A stretch of 59,868 nt of DNA, the filler included, from Platydemus manokwari (lineage: Eukaryota): the NCBI GenBank assembly GCA_037951405.1. It is 6 parts of 6 records of this genome, joined end to end, with 100 filler letters (N's around TTAATTAATTAA, not from the genome) between each part and the next. Parts side by side here need not be neighbours in the genome. Positions count along the whole stretch, not along the records: positions 19,699 to 29,965 come from JBBMOY011151771.1; 5 more parts are not named here. One strand, given 5' to 3'. Made by a program: the position numbers and the translations under genes. Position 1 is the first letter of the stretch. Every line of letters begins with the position of its first letter. Below the pieces are notes generated by a model. The model did no database searches. It was given only the letters and a program-made list of their open reading frames with translations, and was not told the origin of the DNA. This document shows, piece by piece, positions 19,699-29,965 of this stretch.

Positions 19699-19934
19699 AC
19701 CGACCTGGTTAAATAAAGGAAGTGAGCAAAAGACATTGGTATCCATGTTTAACTTAAAATTTAACTCTCTCTCTTTCTCTCTTTCTCTCTAAATATATAA
19801 AACAAATTAAATAAAATAATATCTTAGTGTAGAAAAAAATTATTGATAAAGTTTTAAGATTGACTATAAAATATATAACCGTCATTATTTTTTATTGACC
19901 GAAACCCTTTAAAATCAATTATTCGACTATTTTA

Positions 19935-20803
19935 TCAAATTGTGATCGGTTTACAGATATTTTCTGTAATCGTCCAATCTGTGCAGTCACTCTTGTCAGT
20001 TATGTTGATTCCGTAATGGTTGACCAGCTGTTCTATGTGTTCCGATATTGGAAAATCCCAGAACGTACCAGCAACAATGAAATTCCAGTTTTTGGTGCGA
20101 AAATAATTCATTAAATCATTTGTATCAAATTGTGAATATTGTGAAATACCGAAAACAAAATTTGAATTTTGGATGTGATTCTTATATTTTTCAATACCGT
20201 GATAACACTTTGAATAATCGATACATGTTCCTTTAGTTAAATATTTTAAAAATCTGTTCCGAAAGGCACCGAAACTGTTGTTTTCATCAAGAACCATTTC
20301 CATTTTTGGAAGAGCTATTAGTCTACTATTCATATATGAACCAGTTGCCATAATGATCTTATTTCTATGGCCCTTAAGGATTGGAATAGCTTGAGTTTCG
20401 TCTATAATAGTAAATATAGATGGATATCCTTTACCAAATTTATAATTTATTCCACTCAATAATTGAAACGCTGCACCACTGGTATATTCTTGGTACTATA
20501 ATATTAATAAGATGTCCTGAAAATAAAATATAACTCACTAATTTTTTGTGACGATTATTGATATGCACCGTTACATTCTGACATGCAGTATTAGATGGGC
20601 ATATTTCCGGAATATAAGTGACACATTGATTTAGTTCCATCGTAGTTATATCCTTTGCAATCAGCCAATGCACCGCATTTCCATGGGCATATATATGACT
20701 TCATTCTTGTAGATTCTATAGGCTTGAAAACACATGTTTTTATAATATCATATGATTGAGCATTACTATAAGTAAATAGTACAATAAAACACCAGTAAAA
20801 CAT
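19935..20803 (-). CDS. PAN + TCAF-N-like family, copy B (full length, one frameshift at ~20608); exons 20803-20539 and 20495-19935
   Basis: Signal-peptide-like MFYWCFIVLFTYSNA; PAN/Apple pattern CPWKCGALADCKGYNYDGTKSMCHLY; frame change to EICPSNTACQNVTVHINNRHKKL; 43-nt GTGAGT...TATAG intron (20538-20496); intact exon 2 YQEYTSGAAFQLLSGINY...ENICKPITI. Confidence 0.8.
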
Positions 20804-23800
20804 TGCAAATGAAAAAATAAAAAACTGTCATGATTCATAAATGAATTTTTATTTTAATCATATTTCATTGGCTATTTGTGTTTATGGAATAATTTGGGAA
20901 AATCTATAATTCTATAATTATTACAATTTAAAAATATTGTGCGTTCGTTATTAATAAAAAAGGTTTCAAACACATTAATATTAGTCATTACTATGCTTTA
21001 TATCAATAGCCATCATTTATCTTAGAAAAATTGATTAATTTCTAAAAATGCTCAAAATAAATTTAATGATTAATTCTGATAAACTAATATAGCTAGATAA
21101 TATTGGAAATTTTTTAAAAATCTTATAAACAATGTGGTTTTTCAAACTTTAATAATTTTTTGGGCATAAGTTAAGAAAAAGGGTCCTTTGACCTACTTTC
21201 GTTATAATGAATTTTCGCGCACGATACAATTTTATAACTTAATTTTTATATATAATTGCTATGTTTGATTTATTCTTGTCATTCAGATAATATCTCATTT
21301 TTAAGATGTGTAATAGTGACAAAAACCAAGCTCCCATTCTAATCACAACACTTCTATATAATTATTTGAGCTTTTAATTTTAAATTTTTATAATTATAAA
21401 TGGAGCTAGTTAATTAATTACAGACATGTTCAATAATATCATTTTTTATTTTTATAAAATAATTGTAAAAATTGAGAATATATCACAAATTGCTTCTAAT
21501 TTTAAAAAAGGGTCCTCATAATTTTCAATAAATTGCAATTCGACCTACTTTTTATTTTTTTCTTTTGTTTTTATTTAATACTTGATTTCAAACAACTAAA
21601 ATTCTTCTTAAGTGCTTAAATAAAAAACTCAAAATGTTTTTAAAGAATATAATTAAATAAACTATATAGAATTTTGCAATACACTCAATATATTTTAAAT
21701 TTCATTTTAGGACTCTTTTAAAGTCTATTTTTGTGGTGGAATTAAATAGCGCTTTTACGAATATAATGTATAATTTAATAATCAATAAACTAATCAACAT
21801 AAACAATGTTTTTAGACATCGAACTGTTCATCTTTGCAAGGAAAATATATTTAAAATTTAGGGAGGCTGACTAAATGTTTAGCATATTTAATTCTAATTT
21901 TAACTTACACATTAATTGATTTATGTGTTATTATTATTTTTAAATATCGACATTTTGCATCATCTCTTTGTGATGTGGGTGTATTGTGAACATGACATTG
22001 AATTTGGATCCCACTTTTGCTTTTTAAAGAATAAGCACATTTTCTGTAAAAATATCGATCATAAATGGAATAAATAAAGATAAATTTGAACAATGTATTC
22101 TTCATAATCTTACCAGTTTCTATTTGAACTTAATTTGTCAATTCGCGTTAAAAATTTATATTTGGTTTTAGTCAGACTACAGTAATTGTTGGTATAACAA
22201 TTATCAGTTGCACTATGTCGCTCAATGGATTATAAAATATATATAATTCATTGGAGAAGATTCGTTCTCTATACAATATTTAAAAATATCTTCATAACAT
22301 GAGTTGTTAGAAATTTCGAGCTGAATGGATTTGATATTGATAATTATAAAATGCAAAAGTTAAGATGGGTTAAACAAGTAAAAGACCTCAGAGGTTATTT
22401 AAACTCTCTCAAAGTAATTTAAATAATAAACTATAATTTTCATATATATAACTTTACAGGTCCACATCTTCGATGACATGATATGGATTGATTTTGTAAG
22501 AAATCGATTTAACTTAAACATTAACTTCTCACAAAAAGAGTAAAAATGTTCCTAGATTAAGAAAAGGAAATCATTTTTAGATTATGTGAATACAGCAAAT
22601 TTTGGCGATAGAAAGGAATATTGATCTAGATAATGGATTTTATATTAATTTTACCTTTATTATAACTGCGGTACGAACAATTTATCAAAAACTCTAGCAA
22701 ATAATTACAAAAGTTTTTATACAGTATATCATACAGTCTTAAATGATATTTCTTTGATGACAACACCTGCATATGGCATATGAACTCTTGTAACTCTGTA
22801 TTCATAATTTTTTTTGTAATTTTACTACTTATAAACCGAAATAAATATTTGATTAAACTAGTAATGAAAAATAAAGTTATAATCAATCAAGAACAGGTAA
22901 AAACACCAGGAAAAATAGTTTTTCTGATCATTTAAGATTAAAATAAAACATTTCTTATAGATAGATAACCAAGAGAGGAGGATTAAAATCTCAAATGATA
23001 TAAGTCAATGAATTTAGAAGATGTAAGTCAAATTTAATATCAAGTAAAAAACAAAACTACAATTTATCCAGAATGAAAATTACATCGAATAAAATCTCTA
23101 AGAATGGTAAATTGAACTGAAGGTATAAATACTGATACAGAATAACGCAGAAAATAAATTTGGAGCTGTGAATAAAATTTATTATAACTCAAGGAAGATT
23201 TACAAAAACCATACACTTCTATTTAGAGAAAACGTTGAGGAGATGCTTGGCAAAACAAACAGATTTAAACGAACTATTTGTACTAGAGTCAAAGCAGTTC
23301 TCTCAAACAAATTTCCTAATAAACTACCAGGATATATAAATAGTTGAATATTCTGAGAATAATAAAATAATCAAGTAAAAATATAAAAAAGATTACTGAC
23401 CATCACATCTTTGTTTTCTGTCAAATATTCTTTTACACTACTTATGGAATCCTACTAGCCTGTGCTAATTAATATTTGGTGTGACGTATCAAGATAATTC
23501 AACTAGAGTAAACTCTGACGATTTTTTAATTTCGATAATTGATTAAAATTAGAAGAATGGCGATTCCACCAATGATCTGATCCCAATCATATTAATAGGT
23601 TTTGTGTATAATTCGGATAAAAATAATAATGATGGAGCAATAAAATAATGAAGCAATGATCCTAATACTTTTATTATAATACGAAATTATCAAATGTGCA
23701 ATGTGAGGAATTTAAAATATATTAATGTTGTGCCCTGAAGAAAATGAACTACCGAAGTAGGGAACTAGGTCCCGCCCTATTTCGGACAATAAACTAAAGA

Positions 23801-24511
23801 AATGAGTTTAGATATTGCAATCGGTTTTGCAAATTAAGCCCTGCAAACCTTATCGAGCCTTGCAAGGAGATGATCAATTTGACATTAATGAAATTTACCG
23901 TTGGTATTATATTATCCAAAAGTTGAATGAATTGAAAACGCTTTGAACTTGCTCAATAGATATGGTAAATTCCAATGTTATTCCGACGATTGGGTGACGA
24001 AATCTCAAGGTTTGATGGGTTAAGATTATCCCAAATATTGATAAAGATAATTGAAGAATTTCCCGTTCGGGTAAAGATTGTTCCAATAATCGACTGAAGT
24101 AGAATAATTGTTCGCGTACTGAGCGATGATTAAATTCTGTTACAAGTTTTTAAGCTGACTTGCGGAGTCGAATTTTGCTCAGAATTTTATGTGTATTTTT
24201 CCAATTTTGGGCTGGGTTTATATACTCACATTTCTTATGGGAGTGATTACAAATTTCTCCGATAGTGATTTATTAATTTTCCTTAGTGATTAAACGTTAC
24301 TAGTGCTTTAACTTTAGAAATATATTAAATCGTCATGGTAACGTGAATTAAATTTTTGAAATACCATAGAAACACAAATTTGAAATTTTCCGAATTAATT
24401 TTAGGAGTTGACGATTCATATTATTGATGTGGATTGAATATACCAAACAATATACGTGGGGGCAATTTTGAGTCATGCATTCCTTTTTATATTTTGTTTG
24501 GGTCTACCGGG

Positions 24512-24848
24512 TGTAGAATATAACAGTTCTCGTTAATAACCTGACTTTAAAGACAAAACAAATTTGAACAAAGTTTTATTTCAATAACAATATACAACCT
24601 TAATTTACACCGACAAGGGCCTAGCCCCTATTACAGTTTCATCAAATAAAATAAATCACTTACCAGGTCAGCTTCCAGGCTGGAATAGTGGCCGAGGGAA
24701 TACTCCTGGCCGTGACTACAATTGCCTGCGTGCGTAAACGGATTACTGAAGCTCAACGCAATCTTTTTATACAATTAACGATTTATACAATTAACATTTG
24801 CAGCGTAATTTCCTACCACCGAGTTGACATGCGCAGTCAACTTCTACA
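24512..24848 (-). mobile_element. Solo LTR-like element (337 bp)
   Basis: Terminal inverted TGTAGAA...TTCTACA; minus-strand TATAAAAAG and AATAAA; GC-richer than the flanks. No TSD seen. Confidence 0.55.
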
Positions 24849-26498
24849 TTTATATCAATATCACCAGATATTGTTAAATAATTTCCTTCTAAGAAGTTTG
24901 GCTTCTTAATATTTATTTTAATTCAATATAACAAAGCATATTTTTCGAATAATAATTTTAAATTCTTTATTTATTCGAATTATTATTTATTAATTATTTT
25001 TCTCACTAATAATTCTATTTTAAAATTATTTAAAATTATATGTATATTTAGGATTAATTAATTACATTTCTATACCGAACATTATCAATCTTCTAATTGA
25101 ACAAGAGGGTTTGTTTGGTTTGGTTTGTTATATTTTACTGGTTCTAGGGGTTTCAACAACCGGTATGATGACCAAGCTGCTGGAAAATAATTTGATTTTA
25201 AATTAATAATTGAGCACAGAGGAGACTGAGTTGCTCTGGGCCTGAAAATAATGAGGCGGTTATAAAAACCTGCTAATAATTTATGATAACACAATGACTG
25301 AAGATTCAAATGGTTGATATTATACGTTACAGTGACAATCTGCAATAAATTACTATAATACGATAATATATAGTCTGCGGTATGAATTCGATTTTACGCT
25401 TTTTAATGACAATCTTTAATAAATTACTATAATGTGATAGCCTATAGTCTCGTGGTATATCAATGATAAATGCGTCTCTATCTATAATGATTATTCAAAA
25501 TAGCAATACAAAGTTTCAAAGTCTTTATTAATTTAGGAAACAGAAAGGTTAACAATTAATATTAAAAGTGAACACCAAAAATGTTTCAAAATGCCCCGTA
25601 CCTCGTCTCAGCGATTAACAGGAAAATCCGCGCAACGGACGAAGATGTTAAATTAAATAATACGGTAGAAGTTATTATCGACAAAGCTAATTATTGAATA
25701 ACAAAGTTAATAATAGCTAACGTTAAAATTAATTATTGATTATTACAATAATTATCATGAATGAGCGTTTTTAAGAAATGAATAAAAAACGTAATCTAAA
25801 AAAATTGCTTACTCCTGAATCTCGAATAAAAATGAATCCCGGAAATAATAGTCCAATAATGCAATGAATGATATATGTCCACGTATTCACACAAATAACT
25901 GATGACTTTTCTCTCATAATTTTTCTCATTTTGGTTTAGTTTAACGAATTTGGCTCACTTTGATTAATTATTTTCTCACAATTTATTTAATCAATTATTT
26001 TCCCGTGCATATTCTAATTGATCTAGTTTAACCTTATTTTATATCTTTCATATTTTTTATTATGTTTTATTTATTTTATTTTATTTTAATTTTATTATTA
26101 AATTATTTATTTATTCTTTATTTAACTATTTATTTATTCTTTTTCATTTTATTATTAACACCACCGAATTTGTTCACCTCGTTCATATACATGAATCTTA
26201 TAACAAATATTCATTTCATTTATGACAAAACGATTACACTGACCCTTTTAACAAAATAATAAAAAATGATTCATAATAGTAAAAATTACACTAACTGTTT
26301 ATTATTGATATCAAAACTGTTAAAAGCAATTCATAATAGCAAAAATCAGTTTATAGTTATTGATGAAGCAATTATTGATGAAGCTGCATTGTCCTCAAGC
26401 GTGCTTCTTTTGATCAGTCCATACGATGTTTTGGTATGGTAATGTGCTATGATATATGTAATGTTTTAATATGTAGGGTGCTAAAATATTTAGTCCAG

Positions 26499-26575
26499 TA
26501 TGTACAAAAATGTTTGATCTCTATATGTCAGGGGATGTATGTACAAAAATGTTTGATCGCTATATGTCAGGGGGT
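26499..26575 (+). repeat. Tandem duplication, ~39-bp unit x2
   Basis: TATGTACAAAAATGTTTGATC(T/G)CTATATGTCAGGGG twice. Confidence 0.85.
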
Positions 26576-26949
26576 TTACCCAACATCATTTCTATCACCC
26601 TTAGTACCATAAATATTTATTTTAAAATTATTATTCTTCTCAAATTTTTTAATCTCATTAATAGGTATTGGAAATGTTATTCCATCTAAATTTAATTTAT
26701 CAAAATGTTTTGTATAACGACTTAGTCTATTTTGATCTTTATTGGGTTGATATAAATGAGCTAATATTGAATATATGAAACATTTGTTATCATAATTTTC
26801 TACATTTACTGTTATTACTTCTAAAAGGTATATAATTACTTCTGGATAACAAATTTATCTTTGAAATGTTTATTTTTGTTATTATGGAGGATGTTATTAT
26901 GGACCAGTTCAGTCATAGAAGCTTATATAAGATATAAACTCCCAAATTC

Positions 26950-29536
26950 TTCTAAGATTATCTTAATTAAACCACAGCCAGAAGTTGCTATCTTAAATAT
27001 GGACTTTGAAACTTTTTATAACTCGTTCCCGTTTAATTATCTTGCCTCCTGGGAAATCGCTGTTTGGCTGATTCATTGGAATTACCAACATTGGATCCTC
27101 TACATTATAGACACAAATAAATCGGCCTCCTTTTTATTGACCATGCTACGTTTTTTATTAACAATTCCCAAAAGCAACTGTGGCAAACCTTAGATAATTT
27201 ATTTATTAATTTAAATGCAATTACGTCCAATATTAAAATCAATCATAGTTTACTAACTGACCTCCTCAAACAATTAAATAATACGAACTGTGGGCTTTTC
27301 GTAATACAACATAAATAAGACTACGCAGCTCATTCATCAATATTTCATTCCCCTGCATATCCAGATCTCCGTATCGATATTATTAAAAATATTAATTATT
27401 TAATTAAATTTAAATATTTTAAGTTAAATAATACCATTACATCATTTAATATAATTTACCCCATTTTAGTTGACGCAATTAAATTAATGGAAACCGATAA
27501 CCGTAATCTAACCGAAATAATCTTCTATCAAATAATCAAAAAGCTATTTTAGCTTCGGACGGTTGCGCAGAGCATAATGCGTACTTATTTTTATTAACCG
27601 AGTTTGCGGCACATAAAAATATAGACCTCCATTTTTGTTGGATAGATTTCAGCGAGGCATTTCCAAGTATCCCCATGAGTTAATTTGGTTTACACTAGAT
27701 AAGATGAGATGCAATATTCACTATATTAATATTTTTTTATTCATGTCGTCATCTCACTACTGCTTTAATTCAATTGCATAGGGGAATTAAGCAAGGATGC
27801 TCTTTATCAATGACTCTTTTTTTGTTTATCTATAGATTTTCTATTAACTAGTTCTTCTGAACTAGATAACCCACTATTGACTCATGATTTACCATTTTTT
27901 ACCCTTGCTTATGCCGACAATATAGTAATTATAGCTAACTCTGGTGAAAACTTAGAATATAGACGTAATCATATTTATCACCTCTCCGATTCTAATTAAT
28001 GCCCCAAAATGTGGTTATTTCACAAATAACCTCGCAAATAGGGTAGATTTAAAATTAGAGAGTGATTCAATCCCATTAGTTGATAGTAATAACATGTACA
28101 AATATTTGAGAGTCCCATTTGGATCACCAAAACGTACCCCTATCTCTAATACCCTAAACGGCATTATTACTGACTTTGAACATATAGTTAATTCACGATT
28201 GCACCCATCACAAAAATTTCAGTCATATAATACATTTTTGCATTCACCTCTGCTTTTTATTTTAGAATTCAACAAGTTGAAAACTACAGAACTTGATTTC
28301 CACACACTAGATCACAATCCTTTGATAAAAACTTAGATATCTCTCCAGGGAAATATTGCGAATGAATGGCTCGAAATCTACCAATATACCTTTTTTTCGC
28401 ACCACGCAAACTCGGTAGTTTAGGTTTAACTAGAGCACTGCTGGAATATTATATTCAATCTATAGTTTGTTGTTTCCGTTACTTAACCAGCCTAGATAAC
28501 CCTTTTAGAGTTTTTATAATTAAGCATCTTTTATATATAGTTAATACATGATTGGGGTCATCTCACCCAAACAATTTAGATACTGCACTTTCATGGTTAA
28601 GTGACAATATTTTATCCATTAAAAATCCGTCATCAACATGGTTCACTAAAATTAGATTTTCAATTAGAAAATTAAGAAAATTTAAAATTAATATAAATTT
28701 TATTAATAAAGAATCACAAATTCATATCACGATGACCACTGGTTATGATCTAACTTATTTCTTTTCAGTAGATAATAAACACAGGTTATCAGATATCCTC
28801 CATGACGTGGTATAAATGTTATACTATAATGAATGGAAATCTCTCAAAAAACAAGGCCGTCTAGTTCAATGCTTCTCCGCATCACATAGGTCAGAAAAAC
28901 CCTTAAATAACTGGCATTTGTAACCGGAGGTCTGGATATTCACACATTGGGCTAGAAATAATTTATTATTATGAAATTTCACACCATATTTTATTAAATC
29001 TAATAAATCTATCTATTGTAGGAAATGTAATGTCGAACCCGAAACCGCTGTCCACATTTTCATTCATTGCTCCGTAGTCCCAGGGAAATCTAGCAAACGC
29101 CACGCAATGATACTTGACATTATAGGTAAGTATTTACAATCACTCGGGATCGACACAGATATCGACTCTACCCCAGTTGAAGTTAATTCTAAATTAAGAC
29201 CCGATTTAATCATTAGAAATAATTCTAAAAAGCAAACCTTTATTTTTGATTTAAAAATTCCATTTGATATGAATACAAACTTCGATTTGCATAGGTCCCT
29301 TAATTATGATAAATATAAATAGACTAACTAACAGACATAAGACAGCACTTGATGTACTAAATGTAGCAGTCTTTAGCTCCTGGGACCCACATAATGACAG
29401 GTTTTAAAATTACTTGGTCTTGATAACAATAGAATTAATTTCCTCTCTTCGTTAATAATCTCAGCTTTACTTAAAGACGCCTACACTACATATATTGCCC
29501 ATACGAAAGAAGGCAGGCCAAGACCAACACAATAAG
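26950..29536 (+). mobile_element. Decayed RLE-type non-LTR retrotransposon (NeSL/Utopia/R2-like): RT, CCHC finger, restriction-like endonuclease
   Basis: In order: QKAILASDGCAEHNA, CWIDFSEAFPSIP, GIKQGCSLS, LAYADNIVI, YKYLRVP, KLGSLGL, CRKCNVEPETAVHIFIHC...KRHAMIL, RPDLIIRN...IFDLKIPFD...KYK. Many stops and frameshifts. Confidence 0.9.
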
Positions 29537-29649
29537 TACATTCGCCTTATTAATATCTAATAAAATTTATTAATTACCCATTGTATCTCATATTCTATAA
29601 TTGTTTAATAATTCTCATTGTTTGATAATCATAATCTTATTAGTTTCCT

Positions 29650-29965
29650 TAATCATTTCAAAATCATTCATTATCATAACGTAGAACCATTTATTTCTCA
29701 TTATCATAAATCATTTATTATCGTAATCATATTTTAAAAATCATTCATTATTATAATTATAATGACCATAAATCATTCATTATTATAATTATAATGACCA
29801 TAAATCATTCATTATCATTTAAAATCATTCATATCTCATAATCATAAATCATTCATAATCGTAATTTAAAAATTATTTATTCTCATTATCATAAATCATT
29901 TATTATCATAGTCATAAGTTAAAATCATTATCATACTCATAAACTGAAAATCTTGAATTATCATA
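29650..29965. repeat. Degenerate AT-rich minisatellite (AAATCATTCATTATCAT-like core) running into the contig end
   Basis: About ten variants of AAATCATT(C/T)ATT; includes an exact ~32-bp unit AAATCATTCATTATTATAATTATAATGACCAT twice. Confidence 0.75.

Follow-up and report, generated by a model that had tools for sequence, protein, structure and literature searches.

A two-exon gene on the minus strand of the window (the whole stretch of 59,868 nucleotides of DNA that was analysed) very probably belongs to a family whose members combine a PAN/Apple-like module with a domain of the TCAF_N / IMPa_N_2 fold. The gene lies at 20803..19935 in window coordinates. Its relatives apparently form a small, unannotated eukaryotic family of secreted PAN + TCAF_N-fold proteins without a peptidase. 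The domain combination is a new one for the TCAF_N / IMPa_N_2 fold, and the sequence family is missed by current profile libraries. The locus would be a single member of a multigene family that is small and diverges fast, in a eukaryote with AT-rich DNA and very short introns. An intact member would measure ~270-290 residues and consist of a signal peptide, a disulfide-bonded PAN/Apple-like module and a 180-residue alpha/beta domain. The copy in the window is itself probably a young pseudogene. As an explanation of the whole locus, we favour on balance the combination of this architecture and fold with pseudogene status of the window copy and a binding function of the family.

A spliced gene had been proposed here in an initial annotation of the same DNA, and the reading was borne out: a 43-nt phase-0 intron separates exon 1 from an exon 2 of 186 codons. 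The features of the locus, in window coordinates, are as follows.

20803-20801, minus strand: start codon ATG, which opens the 70-codon frame a
20759..20803, minus strand: predicted signal peptide of 15 residues including the start, from hydrophobicity and small residues at -3/-1 (S-N-A before Q)
20609..20758, minus strand: first part of the PAN/Apple-like domain in frame a, with C24, C40, C44, C50 and C62 (Pfam PAN_1)
20603..20611, minus strand: frame break from frame a to frame b, located by alignment with intact homologues
20539..20607, minus strand: last part of the PAN/Apple-like domain in frame b, EICPSNTACQNVTVHINNRHKKL, assigned by homologue alignment
20593-20591, minus strand: TAA, the end of exon 1 frame a, read from the sequence
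20538..20496, minus strand: intron of 43 nt, GTGAGT...TATAG, GT-AG, phase 0, read from the sequence
20495..19938, minus strand: exon 2, 186 open codons for a 186-residue domain with the predicted TCAF_N / IMPa_N_2 fold
19937-19935, minus strand: stop codon TGA, with a TAA immediately after it, read from the sequence
19891..19896, minus strand: AATAAA, candidate polyadenylation signal 39 nt 3' of the stop, proposed from the sequence

At the local base composition, an open frame of 186 codons would occur by chance with a probability of ~6e-8. The sequence piece that carries the gene (19699-29965) is AT-rich, with 21-33% GC, and the source has ~28% GC. All searches were run exon by exon and piece by piece rather than on a spliced, frame-corrected protein. 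None of the RNA runs checked for the locus contains it. A shorter intron of 22 nt, ending at the internal TTTTCAG (20517), was considered and rejected, as it is too short and the frame downstream of it stops after six codons. An imperfect (CT)n microsatellite is found at 19765-19790, ~145 nt downstream of the stop codon of the gene.

The hydrophobic N-terminus reported in the initial annotation was recovered, and it resembles a signal peptide in the window copy as well as in four homologues. The signal-peptide call is heuristic, with hydrophobicity and the -3/-1 rule as its only criteria. In the window the highest Kyte-Doolittle mean over 9 residues is 2.36, and in the homologues it is 2.8-3.1. 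Hydrophobicity reaches its maximum within the first 13 residues in the window, P0002, L003, L006 and P0029 (2.4-3.1), and the hydrophobic core is followed by a small-residue end in all of them, namely SNA in the window, VAG in P0002, LNA in L003, SNA in L006 and SFG in P0029. We infer that the family members are secreted.

Directly after the predicted signal peptide comes a cysteine-rich module of ~70 residues, the PAN/Apple domain that had been suggested for exon 1. When the suggested Pfam check was run, the frame-a piece of the window matched PF00024 PAN_1 with 22.9 bits (gathering cut-off 21.4) over HMM positions 13-57 of 76. Exon 1 of L004 also scored above the cut-off (22.2 bits), and PAN_1 was the best match below the cut-off in L003 (19.1 bits), P0002 (17.6) and P0029 (14.9). 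The frame-a piece can be aligned with the intact exon 1 of L003, P0002, L004 and P0029; the frame-b stretch EICPSNTACQNVTVHINNRHKKL aligns with EICQSNTSCFNVTIFINSRYNNL of L003 and with the equivalent stretches of P0002, L004, L005 and L006. Seven cysteines occupy conserved positions in the window, P0002 and L003. The same layout is seen in L006, and P0029 lacks some of these cysteines. A PAN_1 match above the cut-off is a feature in common with other PAN/Apple proteins, such as those with the plasminogen/HGF N domain and the nematode and apicomplexan PAN-module proteins. The present family differs from them in having a single PAN module that is followed by a TCAF_N-fold domain, a combination that turned up nowhere else in any search result here.

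Exon 1 of the window copy is interrupted by a shift of frame. The last family-consistent codon of frame a is TCC (20611-20609), ending ...CHLYS, and the first of frame b is GAA (20607-20605), starting EICPSNTACQNV...; the family-conserved continuation EICPSNTACQNVTVHINNRHKKL is shifted by one base and runs to 20539. The break is unique to the window copy, since L001, L003, L004, L005 and L006 all read through this point. A Logan contig of the public run X1 (depth 11.4) spans 19829-20816 without a single difference or gap, and no second allele or indel form at the break was seen in the contigs of run X1. As the homologues read through and the X1 contig is identical with no second allele, the break is most likely real. 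The X1 contig was assembled independently by Logan, but the run may be the source data of the assembly, so that this confirmation of the frameshift is not fully independent. The initial annotation had corrected the frame to obtain a complete protein. The break that it corrected stands, and the very need for the correction means that the window copy itself is broken. This copy would give only a truncated product of 70 residues. Exon 2 is still open and keeps 22/22 of the residues that do not vary in the six relatives closest to it, so any inactivation would be recent, and the copy is best described as a probable, recently inactivated pseudogene. It is rather unlikely that the copy is functional and that the break stems from faulty sequencing or assembly, or from one of two alleles at a heterozygous position. 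The intact splice sites, the fully open 186 codons of exon 2 (chance ~6e-8) and the retention of all 22 invariant residues would fit a working gene, but the X1 contig is identical over 19829-20816 at a depth of 11.4 with no second indel form, and the break site is not a long homopolymer.

An intron that bypasses the frame break was also considered and rejected, because the homologues read straight through the stretch and it holds conserved cysteines. A ciliate code, in which TAA is read as sense, was discarded as well, as frame a past the TAA does not match the family.

A Pfam search of exon 2 gave no match. Exhaustive phmmer against 1.84 billion cluster representatives gave 31 matches at E<=1e-3, 29 of them genuine; P0014 and P0030 are tandem-repeat proteins and were set aside as spurious. 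The closest relative has an E value of 2.4e-41 (45% identity) and the next 1.8e-36, and exon 2 relatives were found at E 2.4e-41 to 1e-10. All genuine relatives are unnamed and no longer than 311 residues. Their sources are two ENA metagenome assemblies, a Logan run, a JGI metagenome and a single UniParc entry. The initial annotation had regarded the architecture of the protein as possibly undescribed, and in agreement with this no named or annotated relative was found among the phmmer matches and their cluster records. A word-index homologue search gave 0 matches with exon 2, 2 with the alignment and only the query itself with P0029.

Alignment of 27 family members (A1) revealed the conserved motifs LTxGxCxxYxxCY, NW(H/N)F, G(T)FW, YGI and NIC. 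The CxxYxxCYH pair, which reads TCIDYSKCYH in the window and had been put forward earlier as conserved, is indeed kept, with both cysteines present in at least 90% of the 27 aligned members. Exon 2 of the window has four cysteines, at residues 91, 97, 171 and 181. Aromatic residues are conserved in the family at Y94, Y98, Y104, W137, F139, W146 and Y161, and the invariant and near-invariant residues of A1 are mostly Cys, Trp and Gly. The cysteine of YGIC co-occurs with an extra cysteine ~10 residues past NIC in most members that have YGIC, and branches with YGI[KNTFE] have neither the YGIC cysteine nor the post-NIC cysteine. The window copy has N at the position following YGI and a cysteine at residue 171 instead. 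This pattern in the aligned sequences suggests that the YGIC and post-NIC cysteines may form an optional disulfide that defines subfamilies.

The layout of a signal-peptide-like start, a PAN-like module and the domain was observed in every relative with enough upstream sequence. These are L001 (P0002), L003 (P0003), L005 (P0006), L006 (P0021), which represents a divergent branch, and the protein P0029. In L004 (P0007) the sequence breaks off within exon 1, with the end of the PAN exon visible. A phase-0 GT-AG intron occurs at the same position in L001 (48 nt), L003 (59 nt), L004 (41 nt), L005 (44 nt) and L006 (48 nt). P0002, a 311-residue 'ORF', is the gene on DNA contig L001 read through its in-frame 48-nt GT-AG intron. 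Reading this intron (L001 437-484) as coding gives the P0002 residues VMPFHCHAVYQCLSFQ, a gene-calling artefact. Among the contigs listed for run X1, three more match 20057-20093, the stretch that codes for NW(N/H)FI..GTFW, with 3 mismatches, and one more matches 20432-20476 with 4 mismatches. Hence, paralogues exist in the same sample.

The second domain had been taken for a TCAF-N-like one by the initial annotation, and structure prediction with a fold search on exon 2 had been proposed as the check. These gave the predicted answer, namely TCAF_N clusters and the N-terminal domain of Pseudomonas aeruginosa IMPa. AF2 reached a pLDDT of only 31 on the single sequence of exon 2; with the 27-sequence A1 the pLDDT was 85.5 and the pTM 0.84, and the five models ranged from 81.8 to 85.5. 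Foldseek against the PDB returned five significant matches, all of them P. aeruginosa IMPa chains (E ~1e-5). VIA-align placed the model on IMPa residues 85-296 with Z 12.0-12.1 and an rmsd of 3.4 A over 172-174 aligned residues, at 7-8% identity; the next best match had Z 3.4. In an exhaustive alignment against 48,161 PDB representatives, IMPa scored Z 12.0 and the next best 3.3.

A similar result was obtained with the ESM Atlas. Among the best ten matches listed, the first eight had TM 0.69-0.73 and all carry TCAF_N or IMPa_N_2. They include chordate TCAF2-like proteins and TCAF homologues, bacterial M60-like peptidases, an archaeal He_PIG + TCAF_N protein and IMPa-type metalloproteases. The TCAF_N matches superposed with an rmsd of 3.2-3.9 A over 165-178 residues, and 89-100% of the cluster members carry PF27016. 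The ninth match was an ArsP_1 permease-family cluster (TM 0.70) and the tenth a viral SAP/AAA cluster (TM 0.40). A language-model search with the window domain placed a TCAF_N cluster at rank 24 with a score of 0.90, a weak match. The same search with the homologue P0001 returned no TCAF_N cluster, and the Atlas model of P0001 was poor.

No likeness was found at the sequence level. Neither TCAF_N nor IMPa_N_2 was matched by any of the 27 members in hmmscan at E<=1, with a Pfam copy that may not include PF27016. The family PF18650 predates PF27016. IMPa was not found when the profile of A1 was searched against PDB sequences at E<=10, and there was no TCAF protein among the exon 2 matches from the 1.84 billion representatives searched with phmmer. 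The predicted structures thus support a relationship of exon 2 to TCAF_N / IMPa_N_2 at the fold level, not at the sequence level. The claim that an M60 peptidase is missing proved correct: the frame ends right after the domain, at the TGA 19937-19935, and exon 2 is without an HExxH motif. The homologues end at the same point as the reading frame of the window.

It is improbable that the domain is an unrelated lineage-specific module whose likeness to TCAF_N / IMPa_N_2 arose by convergence on a widespread alpha/beta sandwich or was produced by the modelling. Such a reading would account for the lack of profile or sequence similarity in the Pfam, phmmer and PDB profile searches and for the 7-8% identity in the structural alignments, and the AF2 model does rest on 27 sequences only. 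However, the IMPa match extends over 172-174 of the 186 residues, and in the exhaustive PDB search IMPa is alone at Z 12, with a background of 3.3. In addition, all eight independent Atlas cluster sets with TM ~0.7 are TCAF_N or IMPa_N_2, and the five AF2 models agree. A shared fold is the reading that we retain. The domain is also very unlikely to be an enzyme, for instance a GATase1-like hydrolase. The GATase1-like fold, which the initial annotation had allowed as an alternative outcome, was not sustained: apart from IMPa, nothing lay above Z 3.3 in the exhaustive PDB search, and this holds for GATase1, DJ-1 and any other hydrolase fold. An enzyme would be in keeping with the three-layer alpha/beta fold, with conserved polar residues in A1 (T87, N179 and the H in NWHF and CYH) and with DUF2194 as a weak language-model neighbour, but no nucleophile-His-acid set can be recognised among the conserved residues, Cys, Trp and Gly make up most of the invariant and near-invariant ones, and the one solved structure that shows this fold is an accessory domain without catalytic function. 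The least likely of all is a TCAF-like channel regulator inside the cell whose peptidase part has been lost, a reading for which the fold in common with the N-terminus of chordate TRPM8 channel-associated factors could be cited. Against it stand the hydrophobic, cleavable-looking N-terminus of the window copy and four homologues, the PAN module with 6-7 cysteines that precedes the domain, and the conserved cysteines within the domain itself, all of which point to the secretory pathway.

Compared with known systems, the secreted PAN + TCAF_N-fold family is closest in structure to IMPa (PA0572), the M60-like O-glycopeptidase of P. aeruginosa (PF18650; PDB 5KDV, 5KDW, 5KDX and 7JTV), with which the fold is common to essentially the whole domain. 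An exosite in the N-terminal domain of IMPa, with an aromatic ligand-binding pocket, binds O-glycopeptide. IMPa is extracellular, and the predicted features of the present family fit an extracellular location too. The bacterial IMPa is ~900 residues long, and helical, M60-like_N and Peptidase_M60 domains come after the domain in question, whereas in the present family the domain is C-terminal, lies behind a PAN module and has no peptidase; the two share 7-8% identity and no HMM match. One report describes an IMPa crystal structure with ligand bound at the exosite in the N-terminal domain PF18650 (PMC10550946).

TCAF_N (PF27016) is the N-terminal domain of TCAF1/TCAF2 (FAM115) and of many bacterial M60-like peptidases, and its predicted structures match that of exon 2 with TM 0.69-0.73. 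The bacterial TCAF_N-like clusters of the Atlas belong to Planctomycetota, Verrucomicrobiota and Bacteroidota. In TCAFs the domain is followed by M60-like_N and Peptidase_M60, whereas the present family ends after it, and its conserved cysteines within the domain suggest disulfides, a further difference from TCAFs. We know of no TCAF with a signal peptide or a PAN module. Peptidase-less TCAF_N proteins, which comprise the archaeal He_PIG + TCAF_N proteins of Thermoplasmatota and short TCAF_N-only clusters, resemble the present family in lacking the M60 peptidase, and in the archaeal proteins the fold is likewise joined to other extracellular binding or Ig-like modules. They differ in the partner, which is He_PIG and not PAN, in the domain of life and in the sequence family.

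With regard to function, the exon 2 domain would share its fold with the accessory domain at the N-terminus of M60-like peptidases. Taken together, the predicted signal peptide, the PAN module, the conserved cysteines and the lack of a peptidase suggest a secreted, non-catalytic binder, in which two tandem recognition modules would bind glycoprotein or mucin-like ligands. The conserved cysteines are in keeping with a location outside the cell. A role in (glyco)protein binding is offered tentatively and is possible rather than probable, as it extends to this family what is known of a bacterial enzyme with 7-8% identity to it. We consider it slightly more doubtful that the TCAF_N / IMPa_N_2 fold is an autonomous extracellular (glyco)peptide recognition module, which, when paired with PAN and freed of the peptidase, would constitute a new secreted lectin-like or mucin-binding class. 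On that reading, the expansion and quick divergence of the family would be those of molecules acting on food, mucus, cuticle or microbes.

Little is established about what TCAF_N itself does; it is familiar as an accessory unit of M60-like peptidases and of the TRPM8-associated factors of vertebrates. A stand-alone copy of the fold behind a PAN module, on a predicted secreted protein, supports the view of a self-sufficient binding domain. The family offers a small, simple protein for testing what the TCAF_N fold binds.

Some other features were recorded on the same piece. A stretch on the plus strand at 27640-29220 is what we take, from its motifs, to be a decayed non-LTR retrotransposon, with two reading frames (0 and 2) and many stops. 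It carries RT-like motifs, IDFSEAFPSI (27642-27671), GIKQGCSLS (27783-27809) and AYADNIVII (27907-27933), and a C-terminal CxxC...H...C knuckle at 29017-29070; a Pfam search of the ORF pieces from 27640-29220 gave no match. At the right end of the piece, 29698-29943 is an AT-rich tandem array with nested periods of 17, 23, 32 and 47 nt. A separate 39-nt unit is repeated in 1.9 copies at 26498-26573, with 97% identity.
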